Below, piece by piece: positions 7,035 to 37,491 of a stretch of 64,000 nucleotides of DNA (positions are counted from its first letter, which is position 1; every line of letters begins with the position of its first letter). A program made the translations under genes and the position numbers. This DNA comes from Epithemia pelagica (taxonomy: Eukaryota > Protista > Bacillariophyta), in the NCBI GenBank assembly GCA_946965045.2, contig OX337229.1:434001-498000 (forward strand), read 5' to 3'. The notes under the pieces were generated by a model. It was not told where the DNA came from and made no database searches. It worked only from the letters and a program-made list of their open reading frames with translations.

Positions 7035-7786
7035 GATTCTCACCGAAAACTAGGTGGCGAAACCTACAACTCATCGAATGATGCTAGTATTTTATGGCAT
7101 CCGATGACATTTTCCTAAAAGTGAGAAAAGAATGTCGGCATGCTCGCGAAACTATAAATTTGGCCACGGCATGCTCGCAGTGCACGCGTTATCGGCGACC
7201 GCTCGGATATTAACTATGGCCCAACACGTGCGCGCCCAAAACTATCAAGTGCGCGCCTCTACTATCCGAGTACGCGCATCCACGATTCGACCTAACGGTC
7301 TATGTAATCAAAGCACGAATCACGATCACGCGAGACCATATCTCTGTTCCCACAAATCCAAGAATGCAAACAGCAACGCGCCCAGGACAAGACTTATACC
7401 ACGACAAAGCAAGAGCTGTTGCATCCCATACATGTTATCCATCACCCTATACATTCAATATACACCAATGCCGGTCTACTCCAACCAGTGAGGACCTATC
7501 ACACCAGATCCATGGCCGTATGCAAGAGCCAGGACCTCGGCACCGTCAACCACCTTAGTTAGTAATCGTCTCACAATCATTAATATCACCATTTTAACAC
7601 TCATCTTAAGACTAACCTCTTATCAGTGGACCGACTGCCCCCATCCACGGCGGACTTCGACTTGCAACTCTTCTCTGACCCGTGGAGGATTGTTGTATCG
7701 GTTGGTGATTCGATTGTCGGCTCAGCGAGCCTTTTACCTATCCTACCTATCTATCTAACCCCTGTTGAATCGAGAGAAGTTTATCA
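7029..7786 (+). repeat. 3' LTR of element 1 (758 bp)
   Basis: Starts TGTTAGG after PPT 7021-7028, ends TTTATCA; last 224 bp repeated at window start. Confidence 0.95.
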
Positions 7787-8159
7787 CATGCATAACGCGC
7801 AGGATGGGCTTTTGGCGCCACAGAACGCCGGGCCATTCGCCGTTTGTGTCTACGACACTCATGTTTTGCTAACTAACCTATGACACAACAAACAACAAAA
7901 TGAGATAACTATCGTCCATTTGAATCAAGCTGTGCGTTGCAAGATAGCAGATCAATTCCTGGAAGCCAAAGCGAGGAATCAAAATGAGGAACTCAAGATC
8001 ACTTTGTTTACTCTATAGCTTTAATCATAATATCGATACAGGAGTTTTTGCAACGCAAAAGACTTCTAGGTTGGTGTGGAGACTTGATCAATCTCCACCC
8101 CGATTACGCGGTATTCCCCTAGCTATTAGTATACCCAGTGTATGCTAGTGACTCTGACA
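7787..8159 (+). repeat. Remnant (3' 373 bp) of element 2 5' LTR
   Basis: No mismatch seen against 16443-16815; followed by PBS-like GGTTATTACGCCC (8160-8172). Confidence 0.95.
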
Positions 8160-8391
8160 GGTTATTACGCCCAAATTACAGCCTAACCCGCTACCGTTTC
8201 CTCTGTTCTAGCCCAACGACCATCATCGTCGGACTACCCCTTCTCGAGATTTTTGACAGGCCAACAAGCTGTCTACCCCAAGCGACGATTCACCAACGAC
8301 TCTAGGGAGCCACTTCTCCTTTGAGCCAATTGAAGAAGAAATCGTCTTCAACAGTTCCAGTTCTCACGGAAACGCCTCGGACACCTCCAGC

Positions 8392-11300: not shown

Positions 11301-12567
11301 TCCCTCCTCTCCCATTATTCCCTTCGCAACTCGTCAAAGGCAAATGATGGGAGAAGACGACCCAGCCATCCGTCAAGACCACATTGAGAGCCTAGTGGAG
11401 CACTTTATCCACACACACACAGCCTATCACAAAGAAGAAAATCCACGTTTGAAGAAGACTTTAGAACAACAACTACCTTCTCTCCAACAGAAACTGAAGG
11501 AAGCACTAACCGCTCTCCAACTAGACGAGCAAGTACATCACAGCCGTCTCAGCATGGAAACACCAAGTCTGAGCAGTACCCTGCACACAGCATGGGAGTT
11601 GGCCACCATCTCCGACTATGGTGCCATCATCATCAAGCAGAACAAACAAGGACTCCCTGGTCATGCCATGGATATCACCATCAATCCAAATGACATCACC
11701 CCGGACTCCCACGACGAACATCTGACCAACCTGCCCAGCAAACCAGCCGCCCATGTCGCGACCACCAAGTTTACGACAAAGCCGAAACGAAAGAAAAAGA
11801 AACCACTCCGTCTGAACCTTCCTTCTAATCCCAATCGTCATCAATTCTTCCCACCACTGACTTCTACAAGAACACTGATGATAACCGTGAAGCAAGGCGC
11901 TCTCACCGGTTTGCTCGGCACTGGGTTGTTGTATATTGGTCCACATCTGGCTCCAAGAAAGGCACTCCCATACCTCCTTTCCTGTTTTGGAGGCGCCTCA
12001 GCTGCTTTGCAGATTGTCCACTCTTTGTCGCGTCCCTCCCACTCACCCGTGGATTGTCTCACCCACCGGTTGATTGTTACATGTCTTCTACCAAACTCTG
12101 GCATGTCCTTGGTCCGCTCTGTTGGACGATGGCTGCGATCAGCACTCGGTCTCTGTACCACATCAGAGGGAGAATACCAGCCAACCCATGCCATTGCTGT
12201 GGCACCGAAACCTCGCTCCCACCACGACCGACACCGATCTCACCCAAAGTCCAAACCACGGAAACCAAAACATCGACGAAACCGTAAGAAACACAAACGA
12301 GACAGGACAAACAAGACAACGATTAGACCACTGCAAGGACCACAGCCACTTCCATCACTCATGAGCACCACCACCATACAGGCACATGCTTACACCATGA
12401 GCCAAAATCTGGCGCTCCAAGCTGCAATCAATCATCCACGAAAAATTTCAGTCAGAAATGGAAGACAAACAAGCTTTTCTCCTCATTTGGGATTCAGGCG
12501 CAAGTGTCTCCATCACGAACGACAAGAGCGATTTCATTCCAAACAAAGTGAGGGACGTACCTCCTGA
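8392..12567 (+). CDS. Element 2 gag with very long acidic/hydrophobic/basic extension (1391 aa)
   Basis: Zinc knuckle CLICGSFDHWAKDC and WCAHCGRWTGTH motif; D/E tract; open frame of 4.2 kb. Confidence 0.88.
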   Translation: MASSETTPKPTFKPPKPTMGDLVQLDEYKWAAWTGGKPLPTWKGLDPTAKTYPATPHQRRFGKDITGFETRCSGLSIRYKKGDNLHEFMKRLNDIFVLRGLDTICYLADPANPEEMRHIVNEHTRFNLKLVQKAAPVHCANFDPYDSENDTAARMCLLDSVELKIRKMLETKTNTTETFLVTWMTFINLLQSDSVQKYDALSAKIASQTPFMYPGQNISEMAAHMKADCEDLFASGFYKQTLTLSVLQAFALANGDPLYNLGLLNLYPQVQQRILEIRYMTEQDQQDTLDKEGLSFAHICDKADALYMDAMNLKKWPASTHNKDSKTPPAAFANLSEVQAMALRQHMGDTPLSKGACLICGSFDHWAKDCPHKSSKQASGPRAHSRGGSRGSLNQKPKGNSNRTSRSNNKTTTKSNSGSSVNWKYQAPSQGQSETKTVEGKTWYWCAHCGRWTGTHSTAQHSDDYKGHSKSNKKTSNPGGIAAPQANMISLDLDAGAWAARFPIRNLLSVEDFDSVAPDQTQDDIDSTPSIPDSFWDTFSASGPEDDDDNVSIVVSEGEERRDTTQNESLLNNTVETTDMLLDTRPVDCCDDAKSNDASDESSATTEPPPLIPRFQDDEEEDPDLASLFRNVDSDQTDESVELPPLVPRPITPYGLHQAPATFRPLTFIDPDDLSIAESSDEEEDNDPNAPNRDLMALPPNIRQAFIQAATDELRRVMNLHRIVHPPEDSDDEATETGDTASTTDNDAADGENDQDDEDEDDEEEEDEETDDDDPNGDADDEADDNDHDDDNNDGACPPTMANETNNESETDEEQDPAPEPPDIDFTVDLNKLNLTAKVATINSPWKEYNNSNVGETERTDDTWYDFYEATFTFDKNADPQNTDIHTKIPSDCPVNQEQDQKAPPNFHEQDQATPDRKMPAIQDDEVSPIEWETPPSTNSALSPNSLDLSFITPTRLFHAPGEPSAPKKRPSSPIIPFATRQRQMMGEDDPAIRQDHIESLVEHFIHTHTAYHKEENPRLKKTLEQQLPSLQQKLKEALTALQLDEQVHHSRLSMETPSLSSTLHTAWELATISDYGAIIIKQNKQGLPGHAMDITINPNDITPDSHDEHLTNLPSKPAAHVATTKFTTKPKRKKKKPLRLNLPSNPNRHQFFPPLTSTRTLMITVKQGALTGLLGTGLLYIGPHLAPRKALPYLLSCFGGASAALQIVHSLSRPSHSPVDCLTHRLIVTCLLPNSGMSLVRSVGRWLRSALGLCTTSEGEYQPTHAIAVAPKPRSHHDRHRSHPKSKPRKPKHRRNRKKHKRDRTNKTTIRPLQGPQPLPSLMSTTTIQAHAYTMSQNLALQAAINHPRKISVRNGRQTSFSPHLGFRRKCLHHERQERFHSKQSEGRTS

Positions 12568-15500
12568 CTATCAGGTCCAAGGTTTGGCCGAAGGAGCACA
12601 AGTCGAAAGTCAAGGAGTCGTGGAATGGTACATCAAAGACGTCCATGGACGGCTACGATGCATCGAACTCCTTGCTCTGTACATACCCGCAGCTGGCTGT
12701 CGGCTTCTCAGTACAAGCAGCCTCTTACAACGATACCAAGGGGAAACCATAAAAATCGAACCACAAGGACTCAAACTTAGCGGTGTGAGAAACGACCCTG
12801 CTCGAGGACCAATAAAAGTCGAAATCGAAGCCGAAAGCAACTTACCGAAAAGCATCTGCTACCACCGACTAGGAGTGAACCGTTCAGTCTCTGCATTCGT
12901 TGCCACTGTCACCACAGTCGACGAACGAAACATAAACCTTTCAGCGCCACAAAAGGTCTGGAGCCAATGGCACATCCGGTTTGGACATGCACCCTTCCGC
13001 GTCGTCCAGTTTGTTCTCCGCTCTGGTGTATTGTCAAATGATGAGTCGTCGCGACGACTCCACACTGCCGTCTGCAAACTGACCACTCCTCCGTTGTGTG
13101 CCGCTTGTCTTTATGGAAAACAAAAGACCAGGCACTCCCCAGGACAGAAAACCGTCAAAATACAAGACAAAGAAGGAGCCCTGAAAAAGAACCACCTTTT
13201 TCCCGGTCAACAAGTTTCAGCAGACCACTTCATCTGCTCGACAAAAGGACGCCTCTACACATCAAAAGGCAAAACCAAAGAAGAAGCAATGCTTAGCGGT
13301 GGATGCATTTTCGTAGACCACGCAAGTGGATACATCGACGTATCCATGCAAACTCACCTTAACACCCACCAAACACTAAAAGCAAAAACAGAATACGAAC
13401 AACGATGTCAGAACCAAGGAGTGATCATTCAACAATATCACACAGACAATGGCACCGCCTTCACCTCGAAGAAATACACCGAGCATCTGCAAGCCTTTCA
13501 GCAAGTAACAAGCTTTGCCGGTGTAGGCGCACACCACCACAATGGCGTGGCAGAGCGCAGCATCCAAACCATCATGTCCATGGCAAGGACCATGATGTTA
13601 CACGCCGCCACCCATTGGCCCGAAGTTGCAGACCCAACTCTTTGGCCCATGGCCGTCGACCATGCTGTTTTCATCTACAACCGACTCCCCAAGATTCAAA
13701 CAGGAATTTCCCCCATCGACCTCTTCACCAAGACAAGATGGGAGCAACGCCGCTTCCACGATCTTCATGTCTGGGGTGCACCGGCATATGTTCTGAACAA
13801 AACAATACAAGACGGTAAGAAATTACCACGATGGAAGCCAAGAAGTCAACGCTGCATGTTTGTTGGATTCTCCCAACAACATGCACTCACCGCTCCACTT
13901 GTACTTAACCTCGACACGGGCACAATCTCACCGCAATACCACGTTGTCTTCGACGACTGGTTTGCAACAGTGGCAGCAACCAACGAAAACTCCCACTCAC
14001 CACATGCAACAGTTGACCAAATCTTCGCAAACATGGACAACATTCTGCACTCACCAGGATACGACGATCCATCAGCAGACGACGATTCTCCGAATGACAC
14101 GCCCGAAGCCACTGCCTCCGAACTCACCAAAAACAAGATCTTTGAGGCCATGGAAAACGCGACCCCTCCTGTTCCACTGGAATACGACACCCCTGCCGTA
14201 CCACCAACTTCAACCACGGCTGCCCCTCCCTTGCCCCACCCAGTCAGTACTCCACGTCCAGTGTCTACCCCACCCAGTGTTCCGTCGTCGCTAGCCAATG
14301 CTCCGTCGCGCATGTCGACCAATCCTCCTCCCACCACTTTGGCTACACCGCACAAAATCCCTCCCCTTTCCATTGAAGATGATTGGACCATGCCCACGGA
14401 TCAGAGGGAGAGCACACCAACACAGGCTCCTCCTGCCCCCAAATCACAACCACCTGAACACAAGCCACAGAGGGAGCCAACCAAACAGAGGGAGCCATCC
14501 AACCAGAGGGAGCATGCCTCTCCAGCCCCTCGTCGATCCGGCCGAAACCGACGTTCACCCAATCGTCTCGTCGAATCCATGGACCCCACACACAAGTCCT
14601 ACCTTGCCCACGTCGATACTCTTGACAACCTACCCTTTCAAGCCACAATTGGACTCTTCAAGGCAACCATCGTAGACCCCGACACTCTGGGCTACGATCA
14701 AGCGTTGAAAGATGCAGACCTTCTTCACTGGCGCAAGGCAGCAAAACAAGAAATTGATGAGCTAACAGAAAAAGAGACATGGATTGAAGAGCCACAGTCG
14801 GCTGCCAAAACCAAGATTCTACCAGGCACATGGGTTTTCAAACGAAAACGCCACGCCGATGGAACAATCAAGAAGCACAAAGGACGCTACTGCGTGAGAG
14901 GCGACCTTCAAGAACAAGCACCAGACGCCTATTCACCAGTTGTAAATTGGGCAATCATCCGAATCTGCATGATCTACGCCCTAAGTCAACAATGGGTAAT
15001 GGTATGCATAGACTTCAGCAATGCCTTCGTCCAGGCAAAACTCAAGGAACCCATCTGGATCCACATACCACCTGGTTTCAAGTCAACCAGCTCAGAACCC
15101 ACCTGCCTACGTCTACTGAAGAGTCTCTACGGTTTGACCATTGCCCCTAGATTATGGTATGAAAAACTCATTGAAGCTCTTTTGGAAGATGGTTTCAAGA
15201 AAAGCGACTATGACGAATGTTTCTTCATGAAACCAGACATGCTTCTCTTCATTTGGGTGGATGATTGTGGCATCGTTGCACCCACCATGACTCTTGTGGA
15301 TGCATTCATTAAACGACTGAAAACAAAAGGTTTCGAATTGTCCAAAGACTCCGATTTCGCAGAATACCTGGGAATCGATTTCAAGCGGAACAAGGACGAG
15401 ATTGTAATGACTCAACCCGGCTTAATCAAGCGCATCCTCCAAACCACAAAGATGGAAGACTGCAACGGAAATTGGACCCCTGCAGCGCAGATTGGATTGG

Positions 15501-16285
15501 GAAGTGATCCCAACGGACCTCCCATGAAAGACAATTGGAACTATCGGTCAGTGGTTGGTATGTTGTTGTATCTCTCCACCAACACACGGCCAGATATAAC
15601 GTTTGCCGTGAGCCAAGTGGCACGTTTTTCCAATGATCCAAAACAATCGCACGCTCAAGCCGTCAAAGCCATCATCCGATATCTCTCACGGACCATCGAC
15701 AACGGCACCATCTTTCGTCCAAGCAAAGATTATCGGCTTGATTGTTATGTCGATGCAGACTTCATGGGTCTGCACGGCCGAGAACCAGAAGACGATCCAA
15801 CAAGCGCCAAGTCCCGAACTGGGTATATCATCTTCTTTGGGGGAAGTCCTCTGGTTTGGAAATCTCAATTGCAAAGCGAAATTGCAACAAGCACCTTTCA
15901 CTCCGAATACGTGGCTCTGTCCCAAGCCATGAGAGTTGTAGTTTGGTTGCAAGAAGTCTTGAACGAGTTAAACTCTTGTGTGAGAATCAATCCAAGTGTG
16001 CCACGGATTACTGCAGAAGTCCATGAGGACAACAATAGTGCTTACCTTGTGGCCACCAACCAACGTCTCACCTCTCGATCTCGCTCGCTAAACAACAAGT
16101 GGCACTGGTTTTGGTCCCAGGTGAAAGCCACAAACGCAACCATTGTGTCCTCGAAATCCGATATGGAAGACCGAACGATTACGATTTCCAAAATCGACAC
16201 CAAGTTGCAACGGGCCGACATCCTCACGAAAGGTCTGGCTCGAGAAACCTTTGAGACCATCCGAAAACTAAATCAAGGATGGTGA
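12458..16285 (+). CDS. Element 2 pol (protease, integrase, RT, RNase H), +1 frame relative to gag
   Basis: IWDSGAS protease; WHIRFGH...CAAC zinc motif; VSADHF/YHTDNG/NGVAER integrase; WVDDC RT; YVDADF/EDN/RADILTK RNase H. Confidence 0.95.
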   Translation: MEDKQAFLLIWDSGASVSITNDKSDFIPNKVRDVPPDYQVQGLAEGAQVESQGVVEWYIKDVHGRLRCIELLALYIPAAGCRLLSTSSLLQRYQGETIKIEPQGLKLSGVRNDPARGPIKVEIEAESNLPKSICYHRLGVNRSVSAFVATVTTVDERNINLSAPQKVWSQWHIRFGHAPFRVVQFVLRSGVLSNDESSRRLHTAVCKLTTPPLCAACLYGKQKTRHSPGQKTVKIQDKEGALKKNHLFPGQQVSADHFICSTKGRLYTSKGKTKEEAMLSGGCIFVDHASGYIDVSMQTHLNTHQTLKAKTEYEQRCQNQGVIIQQYHTDNGTAFTSKKYTEHLQAFQQVTSFAGVGAHHHNGVAERSIQTIMSMARTMMLHAATHWPEVADPTLWPMAVDHAVFIYNRLPKIQTGISPIDLFTKTRWEQRRFHDLHVWGAPAYVLNKTIQDGKKLPRWKPRSQRCMFVGFSQQHALTAPLVLNLDTGTISPQYHVVFDDWFATVAATNENSHSPHATVDQIFANMDNILHSPGYDDPSADDDSPNDTPEATASELTKNKIFEAMENATPPVPLEYDTPAVPPTSTTAAPPLPHPVSTPRPVSTPPSVPSSLANAPSRMSTNPPPTTLATPHKIPPLSIEDDWTMPTDQRESTPTQAPPAPKSQPPEHKPQREPTKQREPSNQREHASPAPRRSGRNRRSPNRLVESMDPTHKSYLAHVDTLDNLPFQATIGLFKATIVDPDTLGYDQALKDADLLHWRKAAKQEIDELTEKETWIEEPQSAAKTKILPGTWVFKRKRHADGTIKKHKGRYCVRGDLQEQAPDAYSPVVNWAIIRICMIYALSQQWVMVCIDFSNAFVQAKLKEPIWIHIPPGFKSTSSEPTCLRLLKSLYGLTIAPRLWYEKLIEALLEDGFKKSDYDECFFMKPDMLLFIWVDDCGIVAPTMTLVDAFIKRLKTKGFELSKDSDFAEYLGIDFKRNKDEIVMTQPGLIKRILQTTKMEDCNGNWTPAAQIGLGSDPNGPPMKDNWNYRSVVGMLLYLSTNTRPDITFAVSQVARFSNDPKQSHAQAVKAIIRYLSRTIDNGTIFRPSKDYRLDCYVDADFMGLHGREPEDDPTSAKSRTGYIIFFGGSPLVWKSQLQSEIATSTFHSEYVALSQAMRVVVWLQEVLNELNSCVRINPSVPRITAEVHEDNNSAYLVATNQRLTSRSRSLNNKWHWFWSQVKATNATIVSSKSDMEDRTITISKIDTKLQRADILTKGLARETFETIRKLNQGW

Positions 16286-16311
16286 CCTGTGACACCAAGC
16301 CCAAGAGGGAG

Positions 16312-16815
16312 AGTCGCAGTTTATGTTTTTAGCACCAGTCGCGTTTCCAAATTTGTATTTGTGTTTTGAAATATTGAATTTGCACGACTGGCAGTTTGTG
16401 TTGCATGACCCAATGATATAAGCCTACATGTCGGAATCCGCGCATGCATAACGCGCAGGATGGGCTTTTGGCGCCACAGAACGCCGGGCCATTCGCCGTT
16501 TGTGTCTACGACACTCATGTTTTGCTAACTAACCTATGACACAACAAACAACAAAATGAGATAACTATCGTCCATTTGAATCAAGCTGTGCGTTGCAAGA
16601 TAGCAGATCAATTCCTGGAAGCCAAAGCGAGGAATCAAAATGAGGAACTCAAGATCACTTTGTTTACTCTATAGCTTTAATCATAATATCGATACAGGAG
16701 TTTTTGCAACGCAAAAGACTTCTAGGTTGGTGTGGAGACTTGATCAATCTCCACCCCGATTACGCGGTATTCCCCTAGCTATTAGTATACCCAGTGTATG
16801 CTAGTGACTCTGACA
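16312..16815 (+). repeat. 3' LTR of element 2 (about 504 bp)
   Basis: Follows PPT AAGAGGGAG (16303-16311); ends CTCTGACA; left boundary inferred from the PPT and the terminal inverted match. Confidence 0.85.
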
Positions 16816-17425
16816 CTGACTATGTAGTGGCTCTCGGCGAATGCGGTTTGGACTACGTTCGTGACTCTACTTCCAAGGCGCTTCAACAACAAGTCTTTCA
16901 GGAACAGCTAATGCTTGCATGTCATCTCCAAATGCCACTATTTTTGCATGAACGCGAAGCCCATCAAGATTTCATTCGAATCCTGGACCAAGTGAGTCAA
17001 CTACCGAACCTTCCACCATTACCACCCATCCTTGTCCATTGCTTTACAGGGACTCAAGATGAAGCACAAGAATATTTGGATCGAGGATACTTTTTGAGTT
17101 TGCCGGGACCATTTGCAAGCCACAGCGAGGAGCTCTTTTGCGCGACATGATTGGCAAACTATCCTCCAGCCACGCGGCTACTTGGAAAGATCGTGTCATG
17201 GTGGAAACAGATGCACCGTACATGGGGTTTCGACGCGGTCCCAAAGGGCGGTGGGAATCTAGTGAGCCGGCCGATACTACCGGTGTGGCCAAGAAACTGG
17301 CCGAAACCATGGGACATGACTACGAAGACGTGTGCACCATGACCACTCGAACAGCTCTCAACTTTTTCCGACTTGCCATAGACGAAGAAGAGATGCGACA
17401 AGAACACATCTCTCGACAGTTGTAG
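16816..17425 (+). pseudogene. tatD: TatD family DNase, 3' part; split by element 2 and frameshifted near 17103
   Basis: GECGLDY, PLFLHEREAH and HCFTG in one frame; TICKPQRG and ETDAPY in the next; N-terminus absent at LTR junction. Confidence 0.9.
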
Positions 17426-17712
17426 ATACTGTTGCTTCTTCTCATGTTTTGACCCAAGTAATTATCTAAATGGTGTGTGCCACCAGATATTTTCTAGCTG
17501 CTTTGACCCCGTATCTAGGTAGTTTTCCCAGTAAAACATGAATTAGTCTCCAATAGATCTTGGCAAAAAGGTAGAATGGAGGAGAATGTCGAGGTAGGTA
17601 CGTATATAATCAGGATGGTACTACCAGCAACAAAGTTTCCAAAATTTTGGCGAATAACAAAAACCATGAGACATGGCGTTGAGGCACTGTATCCATCATC
17701 ATCTGGTCTCTG

Positions 17713-18129
17713 TTATGTGCCTTGGAAACCTCGTCTCGAATCACACCGCACCGAGTACCTTGTGCGATGAGCTCGGGCACCGGGGATCTTTTCTCGAGGA
17801 ACTTCTTTGAACGTGAGGCCACCCAGGAATTGGTTCTCCACCGAATCCACCGAAAATTCAGAAGGATCACTGCCATGGGCCTGGTACGTCCAGGAGGAAG
17901 AGGACGTGTCCTCTGGTATGCATCGGGTAGTCATATTGTGAGAATGATTTCTGGAATGTCTCGGCAACACTGGAGAGTTTGATACAGGCGATTTCATATG
18001 TTCAGAGCTAGATTCCGTGGTTCTCTTGAGGGAATTTCTCTTGTTAGCGTTTGTGACTGGACCATCCTCACGAGGTGCCTTGACATTCCGGAAAGAGGCT
18101 CGCAGCAAAGCGTTGGTGATGATTCCCAT
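17713..18129 (-). CDS. Hypothetical protein (138 aa)
   Basis: ATG-initiated ORF only; no motif recognised. Confidence 0.3.
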   Translation of the reverse strand: MGIITNALLRASFRNVKAPREDGPVTNANKRNSLKRTTESSSEHMKSPVSNSPVLPRHSRNHSHNMTTRCIPEDTSSSSWTYQAHGSDPSEFSVDSVENQFLGGLTFKEVPREKIPGARAHRTRYSVRCDSRRGFQGT

Positions 18130-20032
18130 GCTTGCTCGCTCTATGAGTGCAATCTGAAACTGTGAGCGAGAAGGATAATTTCGAACGATTCAAATACTTT
18201 TCTTCCGTGTAATATGGTGGGGGACGATCAAGAGAGATCAAAAGGCTCTCAAAACTTTTGCTTCGCTTGTTTGTTTAGTTAGGAGCAAGAGTCGAATCGG
18301 GCAATAAGATGGAATCGGCTGATACGGCGCAAGTTCCATAAAGGCTCTATTGTGGCATCAAGATAGCGTCTGATGATACTGATAGAGCTCTTGTAACAAG
18401 ATGGATTTCTCGCGCTTTTCGGTTAGCCCTACTCTACAGCCATACGTTGTGCGTGTATTGTGGCTTCGTCTTGGAGGGCAACCCTTGAATAGAACCCGTT
18501 CTCGCTGTCCGGGGATACGGTCAATGTTCTCGACCTTCATCCGGAGGATAATCGACAAAGAGAATAAAAAGATTAGGTAGAGTACGGGCTCACTGTTTCA
18601 TGGCATGTGATTCGGACGCGTCTGTCTTCAAGCGCAGCGTCGAAAAGATGGAGGCAATTGTAATCAGTTCCTCGGAATCTCGAGGCTTATATGAACGCAT
18701 TCCAGGGCTATTTAAAAAATCGATCGTTCATATTTATTGACATAGGAAGAACATTTATGCTCTATCATATAAGCCTTGTCGATCAAATTTCAAATAATTT
18801 GGTATTCGGAAGTGAATTATGCGTGGGCTTCAATCACATTTCACATAAGCGCAATTCTATGCTATTGCCTTCGGTCGCATTTCTTGGTTTGCTACCTCTT
18901 TCCCGGCCAGCTTCATTTTTTACTTCTTGGTTTTTTCGAAATGATGATTGGTTGCGACAATCACTGGTGAGTGGTGAGTGACAAGAAAAGACAATAAATA
19001 GTGGCATAAACGGTACTGCTTCCAGGCCATGAATTGAACGGTCCATGTTCGCATTTTCGATCCACAAGATTGGCATGATGTTTTTGTTTTTGGATGCATG
19101 TTTCATGTGCATGCTCCCTGGGTGAGCAAGTCCAGCCAACAGCTACCTCCCGCGCATCTTCACCAGTGGATCTGGTTTCGTTTGTCAACAGCATGGTTTG
19201 AAGACGCCGCTACTCGTACAAGTCGTGGCATTTTGAGTCTACCATGCCTCTTGTGCTTCATTGTTTCGATAGCTGGACACAAGAGTGATGGCAACCTAGG
19301 TAGCCACTATATACGACATCTCCAATCGTGAGACCAAATCGCCTCTTGACATGTTATCTGTTGCTTTCTTGATCGTTGATTTGAAGCCATTCCCTCCCTG
19401 GATCAACATCGAGGTGGTTATTGGCCACCTTGATTCCACCAAGAGAACGAACTCGGTATCGATACCAATGCACCTTCGATCTTGATGATATCACACCACA
19501 TGGCAGAAAATGCCAATCGACACATTTCGGCAGGTGCCATTTGCGATTTCCTCTGGACAATGGAGCGTTTTCTCGAAAGGCACATGTTGGAAACAGTGTC
19601 TGTGTCAGGTTCCTAGACATTTGAATTCGAACTGGTTTTTCTTTCAAGTTTAGTTTTGGTATCATCCTTCGCCGTATCCAATAGAAGGACCGTAAATATC
19701 GTCTTTTGTCTGTCATGTTTGTATACACTGCGACCTGCAAACTCCAGAGGATGGAGTCGCAAAGAGTTTCACGGCGACGAGGATAGGATTGTGAGGGACA
19801 TGTGTCCTGTCTATCATCAAGAATGAGATTTATTTTCTGTAGGGGTACACGAGATTGTCTCAAATACATGCACTTAATAAACAGTTGAGCTGGTGTTATA
19901 ATATACCCGCGAGGAGCGTCAGTCCAAGTCGTTGCGTTTGTTGGCGTTGTGAATTTTGAATTTTCGCATTATCCGGTGTTCCATGATTGATCAATGATTT
20001 CCTTCATTTCTTGCAGTCCTCGTTTCCGTTGG

Positions 20033-23350: not shown

Positions 23351-24100
23351 ACGATTTGGAAAGGATGACCGAGAATCGTTACCACGTGGAGTGTGGTGTA
23401 ATGAGATTTGGTCCGAAAGAAGACCTCCTACAATTTCAAAGCTGTCGGTGCATTGTATGTGGACCTAGCTTCAGCTTCAACATGATTCGAGACGACATCA
23501 CTGGTTTGATTGTATCCTTGATACTCTCAAGACAAGCATGTGGGAGAAAACTGCTGATCGAAGGGGTAGAGAATCGTGAAATACTCCGTGCTTCAGACAC
23601 AACAACATCGCCATTCGTAGAGCTTGTGACTCTCACTGGGTGAATAAGATAGTGCAAAAGACCTTGCGGAAGTCAACTTTGATGCTTTCATGGAATAGAC
23701 GTAGTAGGTAGGAGTAGGTAGATGTACTCCTTGGAGCATTAGACCAATGATTAAGGCGCATAGCGGCATATGAGTATACGAAGACACCTAGCCCGTTGAG
23801 GTCGCCCGCGGGCGCCTGATCATACGCGACCGGACATTTTTTCGCAATGATCACAACAGGCACAACAGGCACAACATGCACTCACAAAGAAAAAAAGGCG
23901 AGAGGCAAGCAAAGAGTCTGTTCGAGGAGCATCCCATCCCTGATATCTGGTGCCCCGATCAGGCTTTATCATTGAGTTCCCTTCAAGCCGTGGGCGAGAC
24001 CATCACAAGAAAGCCCCAAGACAAGTTCCGTCCCTTGCAGACCAGCCGTTGCCGACACGGATGTGTTATTTCTTGGCGAGGTGAACAGGCTCCATTACCC

Positions 24101-25580
24101 ATGTGTTTCACATTGCGACGACGCATTGTGCTCATTGCCTTTTGGGTAATGACGTCTTTCAACATGGTCAAGGCGACCTCCGATGGTGTAAAGGAGACTT
24201 ACTCGGCCGTAGCTGCATCGTACGTGTCATCCTCATCCTCTGTCTCGTCAAGGACGAACGCATGGACCACTGGCCATCCGAGTCGAAGCATTGCCCCAAA
24301 GGATGAGACAAGAACGACCAGCAAATCGTCCTCATTCCACAGACATACCGGGTACAGTGCAAAGGACGAACGAGAGGACAGGGCAACGTGGCCTGCTCGA
24401 TCCTTCAATGCCTCGCAATCGACAGAAGACAATTACAAACATTCCAATCAGGATACTGTAAAACCGAATCCATTCCACCAAAGAAAAGACAAGGGGAATG
24501 AAGCCCTCATTCTCAACGTTGGAAGATTTGCGGATATTCGAAAGACGCTCGATTATTCCTATCACAGTGTCTACACCTTGGAGCGACAAGCCTTTCAAGA
24601 TGATTTGATCCAATCGATTCTAGATCAGCATGAACATACAGCTGCGCAAGTACTACGGGGCGGACCTACCGATTCAACTTGCACTTCCGTGGAATCAGCC
24701 ATCAAAGGCACAACGACGGATCAATCATCAACAGTCAGTGTCAATGACATTGCATGGCACACTCCGAAACCGTCCATTTCGGATGCCGATCGACAAACAT
24801 CCACATTGTCAAGAGCGAAAACCAACAACACCCCTCAATGGATTGTCTTCACCGCCGGTGTCATGGGTGCAGGCAAAACCTATACGTTGGAATGGTTGCA
24901 TCGCCAAGCCTATTTTCCCTTGCACGATTATGTGGTGGTCGATCCGGATCACATTCGTCGCATGTTACCCGAATTTCATGTCTATGTACAAGGACCTGAT
25001 CCTCGACATTCCGAACTGGCGGGGGAACGAACTCGCAAGGAAGCCAATTTACTGACTGAAGTCTTGACCAAGGCGGCCTTGCGACAAGGACGATCCGTAG
25101 TTGTCGATGGGACCCTTCGAGATGCGACCTGGTACCAAACGTACTTTGCACAGCTGCGGAAAGATTATCCCGGTGTGGCCATTGCTATTTTACACATTAC
25201 GGCACCACCAAAGGCAGTCTATCAACGAGCCGGGGTAAGAAAGGAGTGAAACTCTATCGGTTGGTCAAGTGTTATTTCTTCCAACCGCAGTCTTGTTCTT
25301 CTTGTCTCATTGTCGAATCTTTTTGTTGTTGTTGTAGAATCGAGCCAAGGTGACGGGACGTGTGATACCTCCCGCCTTGTTGCAGTCTGTCATGGATCAA
25401 GTCCCAGCTTCGGTACAAATTTTACGTCAACAAGTGGATTTGTTTGTCGAATTGTTTAATGGCCCCGATACGACTCCACGCTTGGTCACACCCCCAGACT
25501 TGACATGGCACCAATTTACACGTCTTTGGAGAGCACCCGTGACGACGAGGACTACTACTCATCCAACAGCGCGTCTGTGA
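24101..25580 (+). CDS. Zeta-toxin-like P-loop kinase with N-terminal signal/anchor, copy 1; exons 24101-25234, 25338-25580
   Basis: Walker A TAGVMGAGKT, VVVDPDHIRRMLPE, VVVDGTLRD, RAKVTGRVIP; hydrophobic N-terminus; GT-AG intron. Confidence 0.85.
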
Positions 25581-26149
25581 AGTTACCCAGGTTGTCTTTC
25601 CCGAATATTTAACTCTTTGGTCCTTGGCTTGGATTCGAATGGCAATTGCAATTTCCATTTGGGCCGTGCATTGCGTCGCGACGGCTTGTGGAATGGAACG
25701 GTTGCGTCCAGGAAGCCGGTACCAACAGTTTGCCCCGCACTTCGTGGTATACCAAACACGCTTCCAGTGTGGCTGGTAGTATGGTGAATTATTATGGGCA
25801 GTACTGATGGGTCATGACGCCTCCTCATTATCCTCGTCGTCCACTGGAACTTGTCACGTGTCGTGGTGGACCGCAATGGATTCCAAAGATGCATTGGCAC
25901 AGGACACTGGTACCGACCACATTGTCACAGAGAGGACAACGACAACGACCACAACAAGAAGCAGGCAATCCGCACACAAAAGGATGCTGCTGCAGTGGTT
26001 CACTTTTGTATCGAACTGACCTGCCCTGTTCCTAATCGTCCGTTCCATCAACGTAATCGTTATCAAGTCAGTGCTATCCCATTTCCTGCAGTATCCCAAA
26101 CAACAACAACAACAACAACAACAACATGCCGCCGCAACCACCACAGGAC

Positions 26150-26670: not shown

Positions 26671-27135
26671 CCAAAACAACCATTACAACCACCAAACAAA
26701 TCACCATCATCACCTCACACGAAAACGAAAACGAAGACGACCACTATCCACACTAACAACGACAACGACATGGACCACACACCACCAAGAACAAGAAAAA
26801 GAAGAGAGGGTGAATCTTGAAGAACGACGACGACCACCACATTTTCCTCGCGACGACCGAGCCGTAGTAGTTCTAGTAGCAACAAGAGGAGAAATCATTC
26901 CTCCACCACCACATCTCTCCGTGGCGACGACCGAGCCGTAAGAAGATGACAATGGGGATTGCAATCTTGGAACCACACCACCGCAAGTCTCCAAATAAGT
27001 TTTCCTTGCACAAATTTCTTTTGGATCATCTCTTTGGTCTCCTAGGTAACTCCTAACCCCAAGCCCTGATTTTTCCATCCAGACCACGACAACTCGGAAC
27101 TAGGTAGAAGATAGATAGTCTCTATATTGCGTACA

Positions 27136-27699
27136 GCTCTTGGTGGAAAGCCCGCTCGCGACATCAACGCGGCTGTACATTGAACGGGTAGGGCGACAGG
27201 ACATCAATGGATGCCTGTCAGGCAACTATGGCACACCCCAGAGGCTAATCAGAGGAGCCCAACTCATCCCCACCATCTGGACACGAGTGCCCAGGGTGAG
27301 TAGGCTAATCAAGAGGTAGCCCTAATCTCTATCTAGCACAGAGACCGAAGTCTCCATGCCAGATACCTGGTGACACAAGGACAAGTCCTCATGCCACCAG
27401 GGTTTTGTGATAACACCGACCAAACCGACACACCAACACCAACAAGGACGTCTCCGACAAGGACTCTAGCTAGAGACTCAGCTGATGTAGGAGTAGGAGT
27501 AGAATTTTGCAATCGGTAGAAACAGAAGAAGGGGTAGTAGGAAAGATTCATAACCGACATGACTGTGCGGACGTATACCACTAGCAACCGACAACCGACA
27601 TGTTATTTTTCTGGGTTTTTAATTTTTTTGCTTTTTCTGGGTTTTTTGGATTGTTTTGCTTTTCTTGATTTTTTTGGATTTTTTTCAACTGCACCACTA
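27136..27699 (-). repeat. Repeat R copy 1 (structured-RNA-like core 27149-27401 plus pyrimidine/A-rich arm)
   Basis: Block-by-block similarity to 34777-35492; shared ends GCTCTTGGT and GCACCACTA. Confidence 0.9.
27149..27401 (-). ncRNA. Candidate structured RNA, unknown class
   Basis: 17-bp, 12-13-bp (cUUCGg) and 11-bp stems pair fully only on minus strand via G-U; compensatory changes between copies. Confidence 0.5.
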
Positions 27700-27738
27700 T
27701 TACACGAAAGAAAGTAGAGACGACTATACACTATCCCA

Positions 27739-29010
27739 ATGATCTTTTCCAGTTCGTTCGTTGCCGTGACAACGGTTGCGGCGGCTGCGGCGATTGCGCC
27801 GCTGGCGGCTTCCGAGACCGTCCTGGAGCAGCCCGAGGCCTACCAGCAGCGCCTCGTCGACTGGATCCGCTCCGGAGAGAACGGCTTCTTTCATTCCCAG
27901 GTCCAGTGGGAGCGTTTGGGAGGCACCGGCCCGTACGCCATGCACGCCAAGGTGGACATCCCCAAGGGGGAGAAACTCATGGTGGTCCCCCGGAGCCACG
28001 TGATCGATTCCCTCAAGACGCACGACGAGTGCGTGACGATCGCCCGGATGCTCGACGAGTACGAAAAGGGTGACGGCTCCTTTTTTGCGCCCTACCTGTC
28101 CTATCTCTTTGACGACACGACGGGCGGAACGACCTCGGGATTGCTGCCCGGCTCGTGGTCCGGCGAGGGACAGGAGCTTCTGAGACAGGTCCTCGGCCAC
28201 ACGGAACAGAGCGGCCTGTCGCCGCGGGATTTTGCCAAACCGAGCGTCTTTGAGGAGTGCGGGGAGAACTTCCGGGCCGAAAGGTCCAACATGAAGCTCG
28301 ACGACGAGGAGGACCGGCAGCGCGCGGAGGACGCCCACCTGTTTCTCATCTCGCGGAGCTGGACCGACAAGATGGTTCCCGTCCTGGACATGTGCAACCA
28401 CGGCAACGGAAAATCGCTCAACGTCGAGTCGACGAGCGTCCACGACACGGAACAGGACATTACCGCCTACGCCCTCCGCGACATCAAGGCGGGAGAGCAG
28501 CTTCAAAACACCTACAACGAGTGCATGGACCACGATTGCGACTTTGGTGAGATGAAGTACTCGTACGACACGTCCATGATGTTCAACGACTACGGCTTTC
28601 TCGAGTTTTACCCCCGCCGGTGGCCGCTGCGACCGGACGGACAGGGCTCTCTGATTGCCGAGGTCGACGAGGACCTCGAGACGGGCGCAAAGTCCTTCCG
28701 GTGGATCTTTGAAAAGCCGTCCGAGACGACCCTGGAGTGGATGTCCCTCCAGCTGAACCGACTGAAAACCATGGAATCGGCCTTTCGAAAATCGGTCGCG
28801 GCGCACCGGACCAGCGGCGCCGGTGGATCGCACAACAACATTCCCCACGAGGCGGACAGCCTTTTGGAAATGTTTGACGGATACGTCGAGGTACTGGAAA
28901 TGGCCCTGGAGCACAAGGGCGATGCTCTCGGGGTCTCCTTTCAGGATTTCGAGGAAGAACTCGATCAAATGAGACATCGGGTTACCCATCTGGACGAAGA
29001 GGAACTGTAA
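27739..29010 (+). CDS. SET-domain (Rubisco LSMT-like) methyltransferase with signal peptide, GC-rich, intronless, 423 aa
   Basis: AKVDIPKGEKLMVVP, MVPVLDMCNHG, ALRDIKAGEQLQNTY, YGFLE motifs; hydrophobic N-terminus. Confidence 0.9.
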   Translation: MIFSSSFVAVTTVAAAAAIAPLAASETVLEQPEAYQQRLVDWIRSGENGFFHSQVQWERLGGTGPYAMHAKVDIPKGEKLMVVPRSHVIDSLKTHDECVTIARMLDEYEKGDGSFFAPYLSYLFDDTTGGTTSGLLPGSWSGEGQELLRQVLGHTEQSGLSPRDFAKPSVFEECGENFRAERSNMKLDDEEDRQRAEDAHLFLISRSWTDKMVPVLDMCNHGNGKSLNVESTSVHDTEQDITAYALRDIKAGEQLQNTYNECMDHDCDFGEMKYSYDTSMMFNDYGFLEFYPRRWPLRPDGQGSLIAEVDEDLETGAKSFRWIFEKPSETTLEWMSLQLNRLKTMESAFRKSVAAHRTSGAGGSHNNIPHEADSLLEMFDGYVEVLEMALEHKGDALGVSFQDFEEELDQMRHRVTHLDEEEL

Positions 29011-29214
29011 ATCGTCGGTTGCAACGAATTTGAGTTTGGTACTGCTCAATTGGTGCCAAAGAGACGCCGGGATGGTGTGACGGGCGGAAAGAAATCCATT
29101 GCAAACAATCATTTCGAAGCCTTCCATTGACTATTCGCTGTAAAGTTAGTACACCAGAGCCAACTACGTTTTGATTTCACAACAGAAGCAAGCAATCCTA
29201 TAGGAAAGAACAGT

Positions 29215-29657
29215 TGTTTGGCACTTCTCTTGTTCGAGCCAATCCCAACGATGAATGCCGTATCGAAGAAAAGCCCGTGGAACCCTTGCCTCCCATGCCC
29301 ACACTTTTGTACAGTTTGACCGCGACCAGTCGACCAATGTGAACCGCATGCGGAATGAATTGAATGCCATGGTACAACAACAACAACCCTGCCAACACCA
29401 ACCAGAACAACGTTCTACTGTTGGCCGTGTATTTTGATGGAACGACCCAGACCTTTTCCATTCATGCCGTCTTTCTCGATTGCACGGTCGTGGTGCCCAG
29501 TGGATGCAATTTGCCACCTTTGGAACCTTTTGTCATTTTGGATGGCAGCGAAACGGCTCGACAAGCCATTGCCAACAAGGGCTTGATGGTCGAATTGGCC
29601 ACCTTGGATAAGGGCATGGAACGAGCCTTGCTCTGTTGTGATATCGACGCAGAGGAC
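29215..29657 (+). pseudogene. Frameshifted partial copy of unknown gene A (36749-37211)
   Basis: Aligns to 36749-37211 with 1-, 11- and 10-nt deletions. Confidence 0.85.
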
Positions 29658-29699
29658 ACGGATGTGTTAGTTCTGGACGAGGTGAACATATTGTTACCC

Positions 29700-31151
29700 A
29701 TGTGTTTCACATTGCGAGGACGCATTTTGGTCGTTGCCTGTTGGGTAACGACATCGTTAAGCATGGTGAAGGCGACCTCCGATGGTGTACAGGAGACTTA
29801 CTCGGCCGTAGCTGCATCGTACGTGTCATCCTCATCCTCTGTCTCGTCAAGGACGAACGCATGGACCACTGGCCATCCGAGTCGAAGCATTGCCCAGAAG
29901 GATGTAACACGAACGAGCAGTGAATCATCCTCATTCCTCAAACATACTGGGTACAGTGCAAAGGACGAACGAGAGGACAGGGCAACGTGGCCTGCTCGAT
30001 CCTTCAATGCCTCGCAATCGACAGAAGACAATTACAAACATTCCAATCAGGATACTGCAAAACTGAATCCATTCCACCCAAGAAAAGACAAGGGGGATGA
30101 AGCCCTCATTCTCAACGTTGGCCGATTTGCGGATATTCGAAAGACGCTCGATTATTCCTATCACAGTGTCTACACTTTGGAGCGACAAGCCTTTCAAGAT
30201 GATTTGATCCAATCGATTCTAGATCAACATGAACATACGGCTGCGCAAGTACTACGCGGCGAACCTACCGATACACATTCAACTTGCACTTCCGTGGAAT
30301 TAGCCTACAAAGACACGACGACAGATCAATCATCAGCAGCCAGTGGCAATGACAATACACGGAACACTACGAAACCGTCCATCTCCGATGCCGATCGACA
30401 AACATCCACATTATCAAGAGCGAAAACCAACAACACCCCTCAGTGGATTGTCTTCACGGCCGGTGTCATGGGTGCAGGCAAAATCCGGATCAACCACCAC
30501 ATAATCGTGCAAGGGAAAATAGGCTTGGCGATGCAACCCGAATTTCATGTCTATGTTCAAGGACCTGATCCTCGACATTCCGAACTGGCGGGTGAACGAA
30601 CTCGCAAGGAAGCCAATTTACTGACTGAAGTCTTGACCAAGGCGGCCTTGGGACAAGGACGATCCGTAGTTGTCGATGGGACCCTTCGAGATGCGACCTG
30701 GTACCAAACGTACTTTGCACAGCTGCGGAAAGATTATCCCGGTGTTGCCATTGCTATTTTACACATTACGGCACCGCCCCAAGCAGTCTATCAACGAGCC
30801 GAGGTAAGATAGGAGTGAAACTCTATCGGTTGGTAAAGTGTTATTTCTTTCAACCACAGTCTTGTTGTTCTTGTCTCATTGTCGAATCTTTTTGTTGTTG
30901 TTGTAAAGAATCGTGCCAAGGTGACGGGACGTGTGATACCTCCCGCTTTGTTACAGTCTGTCATGGATCAAGTCCCAGCTTCGGTACAAATTTTACGTCA
31001 ACAAGTGGATTTGTTTGTCGAATTGTTTAATGGTCCCGAAACGACTCCACGCTTGGTCACACCCCAAGACTTGACATGGCACCAATTTACACGTCTTTGG
31101 AGAGCGCCCGTGACGACTACGACTACTACTCATCCAACAGCGCGTCTGTGA
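29700..31151 (+). CDS. Zeta-toxin-like kinase copy 2, P-loop region damaged by micro-inversion; exons 29700-30803, 30909-31151
   Basis: Paralog of 24101-25580 with same intron; GAGK followed by inverted 56-nt segment. Confidence 0.8.
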
Positions 31152-31478
31152 AGAGTCTCTATGACGTTTGGAACGCGTGGGTAAATCAAAGATTTGTCGT
31201 CTGGCATTCATGCCTTCGTCTTGTGTGAACTCATATGAATGGTCTCTACCTTTGGAGCACACTCTTGTCTTGTCGGATGTACAAGATTGCCGCGCATTGC
31301 GTCAACGGTCGCCCAACCGGTCAAGAGCAACAAGGGTGTACAATGCCAATGCCAAGAGTCGTCCACTTCCACAATGGACTGGCATAATCCGATTGGCGTG
31401 TGACCCAACCATGCCATGTCGGGCTTTTTTGTTCGAGCTACCGTATAGCTAGAGAAAACCATTTGGCCCGAATTTTCC

Positions 31479-34776: not shown

Positions 34777-35492
34777 GCTCTTGGTAAGGAGATTGGCATC
34801 TCCCGCAAGCCCGCTGGCGTCGTCAACGCGGCCACAAATACAGCGGGTAGGGAAGCGGAGGAATCAATGGATTCTCCAGGGGCAACTATGGCTCTCTTCC
34901 CTAATGGCACAGAGACCGAAGTCTCCATGCCATACCTGATGACACAAGGACAAAGTCCTCGTGCCACCAGGGTTTTGAATAAGCACAGAGACCGAAGTCT
35001 CCATGCCAACAAGGACATCTCCGACAAGGGCTCTAGCTAGACTCAGCTGATGTAGGAGTAGGAAGTTATTCACAAATACAGCGGATAGGGAAGCCCGGAG
35101 GAATCAATGGATTCTCCAGGGGCAACTATGGCACTCGTCCCCAATGGTACAGAGACCGAAGTCTCCATGCCATACGCCATACCTGATGACACAAGGACAA
35201 AGTCCTCGTGCCACCAGGGTTTTGTGATAACACCGACAACCGACACACCAACAAGACAAGGACTCTAGCTAGACTCAGCTGAAGTAGAATTTAGCAAGAA
35301 ACAGAAGAAGGGGTAGAGTGTAGAGTGAGAAGGTTGAGTAGGAAAGATTCATAACCGACATGACCGTGCACACGTACCACTGGCAACCGACAACCGACAT
35401 GTTATTTTTTTTTTGGATTTTTTACTTTTTCTGGGTTTTTTGGATTTTTTTGCTTTTTCTGGGTTTTTTGGATTTTTTCATCAGCACCACTA
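34777..35492 (-). repeat. Repeat R copy 2, with internally duplicated core (R2a 34777-35065, R2b 35071-35492)
   Basis: Same blocks as 27136-27699; UUCG hairpin block occurs three times (34912, 34988, 35152). Confidence 0.9.
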
Positions 35493-36307
35493 CCCCTACC
35501 CGTACCCGCGGAAAAAAGACGAGCGGATCGTCGAACGTGCACCATTCGGCCTGCCTTTGGGGAGTAGGCAACAGCAAGGATCCTGCCCAAACGCGGGGAG
35601 TCCTCGGGGCCGGAGGAACTCTCGATCATGCTTTGGGGGGCATTCTCATCCATGTGAGGCGAGGTATCTTTTTGGGTGGGGGTGGGGGAAGGAGGGGTGG
35701 CGACCATGGAAGGAGGGGTGGAGTCTCGAGGGGGTGAGTCGTGCCCCAAAATGATCTTTTCGTCGTCGTCGGGGATGAGCGCGGGTTCAGGCTCAGGCCC
35801 ATGACGGTCGACTGGAACTGGAGGGGTCTCCTCGTCATCCTCGAGATCATCTGCGAGTGCGAGAGGAGGGAAGTCCAAGTCAGCGTCGAACTCGCAAGGC
35901 AGAACAGCAACAGTGTCGACGTCGACCTCCTCCTCGGGATCGCGAATCTCGATCTCTCCATCCTCGTGGCGACCATTCTCGGCAAGCTTCGCTTCGGCAA
36001 CTGCAAGCTGTTGTCGAAGAGTCGCATTTTCGCGTCGAAGCTTTCGCACAGACCGCACTTTCCTCACTCGAAGCGCCGCATTCTCGCGACGAAGCTTCTT
36101 GTAGGCTCGGTCCTTCTGTGCACTTTCTTTCTGCAGCTTTCGGATTGTTGCTCGGCGCTTCTTGTCAAGCTTTTCCGACTCAAGCACCGACTCATGCAAG
36201 CCATAAGCGAAAGCGATAATCAGTAGGAGAAGAACAAAAGGAGCACAGAGCTGAGCCCACCAGAGCAGGTTCGACAAGACTTCGTAGATATCAATTTCAC
36301 ACATCAT
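35402..36307 (-). CDS. GC-rich hypothetical protein: TM helix, coiled coil (KLRRENA x2), acidic/Pro region, RRSARL motif; stop lies inside repeat R
   Basis: 301-aa ORF from MMCEID; last codons derive from the A-rich arm of R. Confidence 0.6.
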   Translation of the reverse strand: MMCEIDIYEVLSNLLWWAQLCAPFVLLLLIIAFAYGLHESVLESEKLDKKRRATIRKLQKESAQKDRAYKKLRRENAALRVRKVRSVRKLRRENATLRQQLAVAEAKLAENGRHEDGEIEIRDPEEEVDVDTVAVLPCEFDADLDFPPLALADDLEDDEETPPVPVDRHGPEPEPALIPDDDEKIILGHDSPPRDSTPPSMVATPPSPTPTQKDTSPHMDENAPQSMIESSSGPEDSPRLGRILAVAYSPKAGRMVHVRRSARLFSAGTGRGSGADEKIQKTQKKQKNPKNPEKVKNPKKK

Positions 36308-36585
36308 GGTCAATCGTATTTTGGTCAATCGTATTTTTTGTTTTTGTGCGTGTTGGATTGTCGCGTGTTGTTGTTGTTGTTGGCGTTTCGTGTTGTTGGC
36401 GATCAGTGTACGATTGGACCGAGGCAGCGGGGCCGGTTTATGTCCACCGTCGGGGCATTGTTGCACGCACCTCGAGGGTCGAGGGCCGCAACACAGCGCA
36501 ACTACACAACAATCAACCGTCGGGGCATTGTTTTCTGCAACGAAACCAAAACCAAGATGACGACGACAAGAACAAGAGCAAGCCG

Positions 36586-37491
36586 ATGACGACGGCACAA
36601 CAACAACACGAGGACATGGCTCCTCTGCAACGAAACCACAACCAAGACGACGACGACAAGAACAAGAGCAAGTCGACGACGACACAACAACAACAACAAC
36701 AAGACGACGAAGAAGAGGACGAAGACTATGTTGGTGTTTTGCTTTTGGTGTTTGGCACTACTCTTGTTCGAGCCAATCCCAACGATGAATGCCTTATCGA
36801 AGAAAAGCCCATGGAACCCTTGCCTCTCATGCCCACACTTGTGTACAGTTTGACTGCGACCAGTACGACCAATGTGAACCGCATGCGGAATGAATTGAAT
36901 GCCATGGTACAACAACAGCAACCGCAGCAAGACTCTGCCAACACCAACCAGAACAACGTTCTACTGTTGGCCGTGTATTTTGATGAAACGACCCAGACCT
37001 TTTCCATTCATGCCGTCTTTCTCGATTGCACGGTCGTGGTGCCCAAACTCGACCAGTGGATGCAATTTGCCACCTTTGGAACCTTTGCCATTTTGGATGG
37101 CAGTGAAACGGCGAGACAAGCCATTACCAACAAGGGCTTGACGGCCAAATTGGCCACCTTGGATAAGGGCATGGAACGAGCCTTGCTCTGTTGTGATATC
37201 GACGCAGAGGATGGTGATTCTGGATTGGAACCGCACACCCGATGGTTGCATGGCACCCACAACGACAACGAGCGGTGCGATCCAGCAGATCATGCCACCC
37301 CGTTGCGGAACAAACCCTTTGGTCCGCACCAGTTTATTTACTTTTTCTTTGACACGACCGTACCGGGATATGGAGCCTCCATTGCTCTCTTGACCCTGTT
37401 ATTTGCCTTGATTCTCTTTTTTGTCTTGTTATCGACGGTGGCTTGGCCGCGAGCCTTGGCTTTGTCGGGATTCTGTGTACCGCCGTCATGA
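36586..37491 (+). CDS. Unknown gene A: low-complexity N-terminus, two hydrophobic segments; start uncertain
   Basis: Long ORF; differences to copy 29215-29657 include synonymous changes in this frame (AGT/AGC, GCG AGA/GCT CGA). Confidence 0.55.
   Translation: MTTAQQQHEDMAPLQRNHNQDDDDKNKSKSTTTQQQQQQDDEEEDEDYVGVLLLVFGTTLVRANPNDECLIEEKPMEPLPLMPTLVYSLTATSTTNVNRMRNELNAMVQQQQPQQDSANTNQNNVLLLAVYFDETTQTFSIHAVFLDCTVVVPKLDQWMQFATFGTFAILDGSETARQAITNKGLTAKLATLDKGMERALLCCDIDAEDGDSGLEPHTRWLHGTHNDNERCDPADHATPLRNKPFGPHQFIYFFFDTTVPGYGASIALLTLLFALILFFVLLSTVAWPRALALSGFCVPPS

Follow-up and report, generated by a model that had tools for sequence, protein, structure and literature searches.

In Leishmania, the SIDER elements are repeated non-coding blocks of several hundred bases that lie in 3' UTRs and are thought to control the fate of the mRNA; they are degenerate retroposons and are spread over many unrelated genes. 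The attC sites of integrons are imperfect palindromes of which one folded strand is functional, and each marks the 3' end of a gene cassette, the neighbours of which undergo exchange. REP and BIME sequences are built from a few types of short, stable and imperfect palindromes that are joined by variable linkers into mosaic arrays; these arrays follow closely on the 3' ends of genes, in many cases where two genes converge, and a 3'-UTR action on the upstream mRNA has been reported (PMC3333891, PMC2817692, bioRxiv 10.64898/2026.03.23.713779).

By anatomy and position, REP/BIME are the closest analogue of the hairpin arrays described here, which belong to a repeat (R) present twice in the window, i.e. 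the whole stretch of DNA analysed, 64 kb in length. The 12 R arrays examined are likewise mosaics of short palindromes at an extragenic 3' position. The R arrays are nevertheless not members of REP/BIME. While REP/BIME are bacterial, the R arrays reside in a eukaryotic nuclear genome, at loci that hold eukaryotic genes and Copia elements; R units all share one orientation whereas BIME units alternate; R arrays follow one gene family whereas REP/BIME are scattered over hundreds of operons; and REP/BIME have a cognate RAYT, whereas no transposase of the RAYT type (HUH/Y1) was seen in the R loci. As in SIDERs, the repeated block is non-coding, several hundred bases long and situated in a putative 3' UTR, but R is devoid of retroposon features and follows only one family. 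With attC, it shares one-strand imperfect palindromes at the 3' end of a gene and exchanged neighbours, but R arrays come with no integrase and no conserved core sites, carry many hairpins instead of one site per cassette, and their exchange of neighbours, unlike that of attC, is explained by ordinary recombination between paralogous repeats.

The two copies of R cover 27136-27699 (copy 1) and 34777-35492 (copy 2), the second being doubled internally (Table 1). The initial annotation had listed four stems, A to D, and all were located again at the same positions: B with its UUCG loop at three sites, with a single C-A mismatch in the first unit of copy 2, and C with its CAUU loop and 3' bulge in all three of its occurrences. 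To these a fourth, solitary B is added, and the 23-nt core of hairpin B occurs four times in the window free of mismatches.

Table 1. Parts of the two copies of R in the window, listed in gene-sense order
Copy	Feature	Position	Strand	Remarks
1	C-terminal remnant of the family gene	27546-27699	-	A-rich 9-nt repeat giving the K-rich tail
1	Spacer ("mid"), stop codon to array	27404-27545	-	Short G/T-rich 8-nt repeat; aligned over 9 arrays
1	Hairpin A	27366-27401	-	16-17 bp; three G-U pairs in gene sense
1	Hairpin B	27331-27364	-	15-16 bp; cUUCGg loop; three G-U pairs
1	Module V	27236-27335	-	Judged by eye; type II arrays only; 7-bp hairpin at 27277-27294
1	Hairpin C1	27195-27219	-	10 bp, one bulge, CAUU loop
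1	Terminal module D	27136-27188	-	7-bp outer stem around a small hairpin, 27151-27188
1	End motif	27136-27143		Common to both copies
2	Intact family gene	35402-36308	-	ORF; 9-nt repeat of the K-tail at ~35405-35490
2	3' flank ahead of the array	35230-35401	-	Section that is coding in long-form paralogues, then spacer
2	Type I array	34777-35229	-	
2	First unit, hairpin A	35182-35218	-	
2	First unit, hairpin B	35144-35173	-	
2	First unit, hairpin C	35096-35119	-	
2	Solitary hairpin B	34982-35007	-	Middle of the array, after a partial spacer
2	Second unit, hairpin A	34935-34971	-	
2	Second unit, hairpin B	34904-34933	-	
2	Second unit, hairpin C	34856-34879	-	
2	Array end, D2	34810-34847	-	
2	Array end, small hairpin E	34788-34803	-	
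2	End motif	34777-34784	-	Common to both copies

R had been taken for a self-standing dispersed repeat encoding an RNA of a new class. The data do not support this claim, as the right end of R is coding and the arrays are tied to one gene family, in the sense of that family. The copy 2 gene encodes a product with an N-terminal membrane helix, a basic coiled coil, an acidic/proline-rich region and a K-rich tail; no Pfam family was found for it, even at E = 1, and no neighbour in the ESM Atlas. Its homologues, at least 23 in number, all come from one related ENA metagenome assembly, with several per contig, and the family appears to be an orphan of one lineage, as far as the databases show. Exact-pattern scans for hairpins A and B in JGI metagenome contigs, and for B in viral contigs, gave no match, and further copies were therefore reached through proteins. 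A spurious R-derived ORF running across the hairpins matched one protein, located on a 485-kb contig of the ENA metagenome assembly (locus L001). At 9742-10297 this locus has an R array, in which three B, four A and two C hairpins are found; the remainder of R lies ~3.3 kb before the array, directly behind a homologue of the copy 2 gene.

Eight more family members were fetched (loci L002-L009). Seven of these loci (L002-L007 and L009, with eight family genes, two of them in L004) present the gene and then tail, spacer and array, all in sense, a linkage that is unbiased only for the two window arrays and L001 because L002-L009 were retrieved via the gene; the most distant homologue, in L008 (43% identity), has no array. 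A covariance model of A+B recovered 23 full units in the window and the nine loci (219 kb), all inside arrays and all in gene sense, which corresponds in the window to the minus strand of R. Furthermore, the order of the parts and the gene-sense orientation are common to all 12 arrays examined (2 in the window and 10 in eight fetched loci). These sequence comparisons make R the 3' end of a protein-coding gene, which is multicopy and specific to one lineage, and not an independent element.

Read in gene sense, the unit is composed of a K-rich coding repeat, a stop codon, a spacer of ~150 nt and a mosaic of hairpins of variable number. The 9-nt A-rich repeat, which forms the T-rich right end of R on the plus strand, encodes the lysine-rich C-terminal tail: in at least 12 paralogues it is read in one frame and leads to a common Cys-containing end and a common TGA stop. 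Some paralogues lack the 9-nt repeat and stop earlier, and the length of the tail varies among the others. In both window copies, a difference in the length of an A-run brings the stop a few codons earlier; such changes toggle between a short ending and the longer Cys-containing one (27603-27699 and 35405-35490; proteins P0004-P0020). The spacer holds a G/T-rich 8-nt microsatellite that counts two or three units in the window (27404-27440) and ~30 in L006 (7000-7200).

Stem lengths within the arrays are 17 bp for A, 13-16 bp for B, which carries a UUCG loop, and 10 bp for both C and C1, which have a bulge and a CAUU loop. Type I arrays consist of two or three (A B C) followed by D2 and are those of copy 2, L001, L002, L004 (twice), L005, L006 and L007, while type II arrays consist of A B with one to four (V C1), then D, and are those of copy 1, L003 and L009, module V being present 3-4 times in the last two. 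Three kinds of array end are found, namely D2 with the small hairpin E, D, or a break immediately past C, each with its own conserved downstream flank. The arrays sit past the stop codon and ahead of a convergent gene. The idea that R is better conserved than the coding sequence is ruled out, the 3' half of the latter being as alike between paralogues (85-94% identity) as R itself.

As to folding, three cores of R had been proposed to form the same ordered stems, better on the minus strand than on the plus strand, and our computations bear this out: the minus-strand folds reach -119.7, -85.9 and -73.5 kcal/mol (z = -4.3, -5.9 and -6.3), whereas on the plus strand the same cores give -98.0, -72.3 and -56.3 kcal/mol (z = -2.1, -3.6 and -2.8). 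The strand specificity stands for A, B, D and the small hairpin of V but not for C, which folds slightly better on the plus strand. Over 13 distinct A+B variants from the window and eight related loci, the gene-sense consensus fold comprises 29 pairs (-49.2 kcal/mol) and that of the opposite strand 22 pairs (-25.2 kcal/mol). Array by array, the sense fold is 14-23% better than the antisense one in 11 of the 11 tested, and the 3' flank of L008, used as a negative control for the missing array, folds like shuffled sequence (z = +0.58). The asymmetry is retained with DNA folding parameters (-23.2 vs -16.7 kcal/mol for one unit), so that a role of the sense strand as single-stranded DNA fits equally well.

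The differences between copies had also been said to preserve the stems through G-U/G-C and C-G/U-G switches, and this is what is observed. Among the 377 cells of the 13 gene-sense A+B variants, 99.5% are standard pairs and two are broken. On the gene-sense strand, none of the 13 variants departs from G-U at four of the pairs, and another seven show one-sided changes that leave the pairing intact (G-C to G-U, C-G to U-G, U-G to C-G). When all module instances are pooled, the changes that pair in sense but break the antisense pairing amount to ~8-9 events, some of them in up to 10 instances, whereas the reverse changes, which break pairing in sense, amount to 3-4 events and are singletons without exception. 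Among the pair-keeping changes, those from C to T are present in as many as 10 instances. Strand-biased mutation does not account for this pattern because, on the sense strand of the 3' half of the adjacent coding sequence, C>T and G>A changes are balanced (16 vs 17). The copies of A and B are 88-100% alike, and it is for this reason that they display no double compensatory changes and that the strand-bias statistics rest on ~12-15 events against 3-4.

Hairpin C, whose arms were described as rewritten yet still paired, offers a different kind of evidence. Between C and C1, 7 of the 10 pairs differ in both partners, including one that does so within C1, and since these differences split just two lineages they count as six or seven pair-wise events. 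Pairing is found in 96.3% of the cells, a level attained by none of 500 shuffles. The bulge keeps its position across C and C1, the CAUU loop is nearly invariant (CGUU in one of eight distinct sequences), and, of the three closing pairs, two are constant and the third is compensatorily changed in one sequence. In hairpin D, one C-G pair is swapped to G-C and one U-G pair is changed to C-G, hairpin E is rewritten in L005, and the loop of B reads UUUG instead of UUCG in three units. Altogether, the case for selection on the folded sense strand is good but not overwhelming.

What remains in copy 1 is the spacer, a complete type II array and ~30 codons of the tail. The stop codon of the family is found at 27545-27555, and the gene body upstream is absent. 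Copy 1 is thus an orphaned remnant, the gene body having been replaced by a SET-domain gene on the plus strand (27739-29010; Pfam SET, 1.8e-08). Indeed, the stretch between R and the P-loop gene contains the SET gene at one locus (27700-29215) and the coiled-coil family gene on the minus strand at the other (35495-36749). Homology between the two copies stops at ~27699, a short minus-strand ORF of copy 1 (27603-27731) terminates in the K-rich tail, and the left breakpoint of the gene exchange falls within the last codons of the family gene. The junction is no assembly error, because a contig of the source organism spans it without difference. Larger blocks, among them the P-loop gene upstream and a gene for a FAD-dependent oxidoreductase downstream, were duplicated along with the unit. 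Furthermore, L009 combines a gene of the copy 2 kind with an array and flank of the copy 1 kind, and the arrays therefore recombine.

Several other rearrangements were recorded at these loci. The P-loop gene, which is Zeta-toxin/AAA_33-like, is present in three copies (23876-25582, 29364-31153 and 36346-37491), and the first two differ by an inverted segment of 56 nt (24894-24949 vs 30483-30538, 98% complementary). In L004, a Copia-type retrotransposon (11013-17189; RVT_2, ORF of 1706 aa) separates the stop codon of the family gene from the hairpin array; its two 238-bp LTRs are identical and a target site of 5 bp (CTCTA) is duplicated around it, which indicates a very recent insertion. L001 holds an insertion of 3.26 kb (6474-9735) ~20 nt upstream of the site of the L004 Copia element, with a 5-bp duplication (ATCTT) and without terminal repeats; its ORF of 786 aa matches no Pfam family. 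Further long direct repeats of 99-100% identity are present in the window (1-227 / 7563-7789; 7787-8086 / 16443-16742).

Public runs of one organism carry R as DNA contigs. Over 27064-27457, one run has a summed contig depth of 16,800-18,500 (single-copy level ~130-290) and the other has 3,000-3,600 (single-copy level ~133), and over 27458-27654 the depth is ~ten times single copy, these figures being sums over contigs and not copy counts. Together with the many different loose contig ends inside R, the raised depth indicates that the core is repeated tens of times. In the sole RNA run, matches are confined to the low-complexity repeat. A seawater metagenome run contains a 183-nt contig identical to 27358-27540 of copy 1, and the organism or a very close relative was thus present in that sample. 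Regarding known RNA classes, Rfam covariance models returned no match at gathering threshold anywhere in the 64-kb window and, at E up to 10, only two chance-level matches, both outside the hairpins; this agrees with the initial annotation, in which no snRNA, SRP, RNase P/MRP, 5S, hammerhead, HDV-like or twister had been recognised. ARAGORN detected no tRNA-like part in R. The stems measure 10-17 bp and are thus shorter than a canonical miRNA-type precursor requires, the criterion being a stem for a duplex of ~21 nt. No such array was found described in the literature on diatom small RNAs and palindromic intergenic repeats.

A depth of 20-100 times the single-copy level over 27064-27457 might evoke a mobile element, be it a SINE, a MITE or a Helitron end, inserted beside the family genes. 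We hold this to be highly improbable, since the number of modules multiplied by the size of the family accounts for the excess (2-4 per array and ~10-25 genes), with no need for free copies, and, with respect to a single gene family, position and orientation are constant across the arrays. A tRNA-derived SINE is rejected, R having no tRNA-like head and its A-rich tract being coding and 5' of the hairpins, hence not a retroposon tail. A MITE or the terminus of a DNA transposon, in which hairpins would be DNA-level palindromes, is rejected as well: the edges of the arrays are devoid of terminal inverted repeats and target-site duplications, the flanks are homologous between loci, and 12 of 12 arrays are co-oriented with the family. 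A Helitron 3' end would display a single subterminal hairpin ~10 nt before CTRR and insertion between A and T, and no array end fits CTRR, the sense strand of the arrays ending in ...CCAAGAGC or ...GCTGTATTT and the opposite strand in ...CACCACTA. One or several independent genes for a structured ncRNA, located downstream of the family gene and duplicated with it, would account for the fact that structure favours one and the same strand, that the hairpins of copy 1 are intact despite the loss of the gene body, and that the sense strand of the array is free of T-runs of four or more. Such genes are nonetheless unlikely: no Rfam family and no tRNA-like part were found in the hairpins, the ends are undefined, and module number and order vary with three downstream junctions, unlike in a discrete RNA gene.

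The asymmetry that survives DNA parameters leads to another reading, in which the sense strand would act at the DNA level, as folded single strands or cruciforms that serve as sites of recombination or replication stalling. These sites would drive the shuffling of modules and the exchange of neighbouring genes and would resemble attC, or REP/BIME with their dedicated recombinases. The mosaic arrays with recurrent breakpoints, the hybrid L009 and the replacement of the copy 1 gene exactly at the edge of R all go in this direction, but no recombinase or HUH gene was found at the loci, tandem modules of 90% identity recombine without any special site, and a DNA-level role does not predict the fixed co-orientation with the upstream gene, so that we assign it a low probability. 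The hairpins might also be a functionless, palindrome-rich minisatellite hitch-hiking with the gene family, the pairing being due to hairpin-templated repair and to youth instead of selection. In keeping with this, most pairs of the 88-100% identical copies are constant (13 of the 17 A pairs and 7 of the 12 B pairs), the neighbouring microsatellites denote a slippage-prone region, and the loop of B is not strictly conserved. However, templated correction would erase G-U pairs, whereas four are fixed in 13 of 13 variants on one strand; pair-breaking changes remain singletons while pair-keeping ones spread; C and C1 differ by six independent compensatory pairs with the bulge kept in place; and coding-sequence transitions have no strand bias. 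This explanation thus seems to us rather improbable too. Finally, the array may combine roles as a eukaryotic counterpart of REP/BIME or attC, guarding or regulating the mRNA of its cassette and, as single-stranded DNA, hosting the exchange of neighbouring genes, possibly with the participation of a recombinase. The exchange of a coiled-coil gene for a SET gene at copy 1 and the hybrid L009 are in point for an attC-like reading, which we nonetheless deem very unlikely.

The reading that we favour, with close to half of our confidence, is that the hairpins form a structured 3'-UTR array acting in the mRNA. Position and sense orientation of the array are compatible with a 3'-UTR element, and three features point to the transcript: an orientation that is always that of the gene, the presence of G-U pairs and the cUUCGg loop. 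Counting against it, a 3' UTR of 0.5-1 kb is long for a compact algal genome. The array would have been copied with its gene through segmental duplication, its modules would have been reshuffled via unequal or ectopic recombination, and the hairpins would be selected in the sense transcript, within a long structured 3' UTR. There, they may act in cis by blocking 3'-to-5' decay or read-through between close convergent genes, or by offering a multivalent platform to a protein that recognises the invariant hairpin segments next to the loops; the two options may apply singly or together.

What had been viewed as an unknown class of dispersed RNA is thus better described as the tail, rich in hairpins, of an orphan gene present in many copies, a less exotic finding and a candidate 3'-UTR system, built on the observed anatomy of the tail, its linkage to the gene in a fixed orientation and the strand-biased, pair-preserving variation of its stems. 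Its reach is limited to an orphan family of one lineage, as far as databases show. It also carries a caution, as "dispersed repeats" inflated in depth may be the multi-module tails of genes. Should the array belong to the mRNA, a diatom-like alga would present an unusually clear example of a long, modular 3' UTR selected for its structure. The number of units varies between paralogues and therefore provides a natural dosage series, which could address the effects of the hairpins on mRNA stability, on the termination of convergent genes and on the recruitment of proteins. Furthermore, this family shows how a gene and its putative regulatory tail may expand and recombine together.
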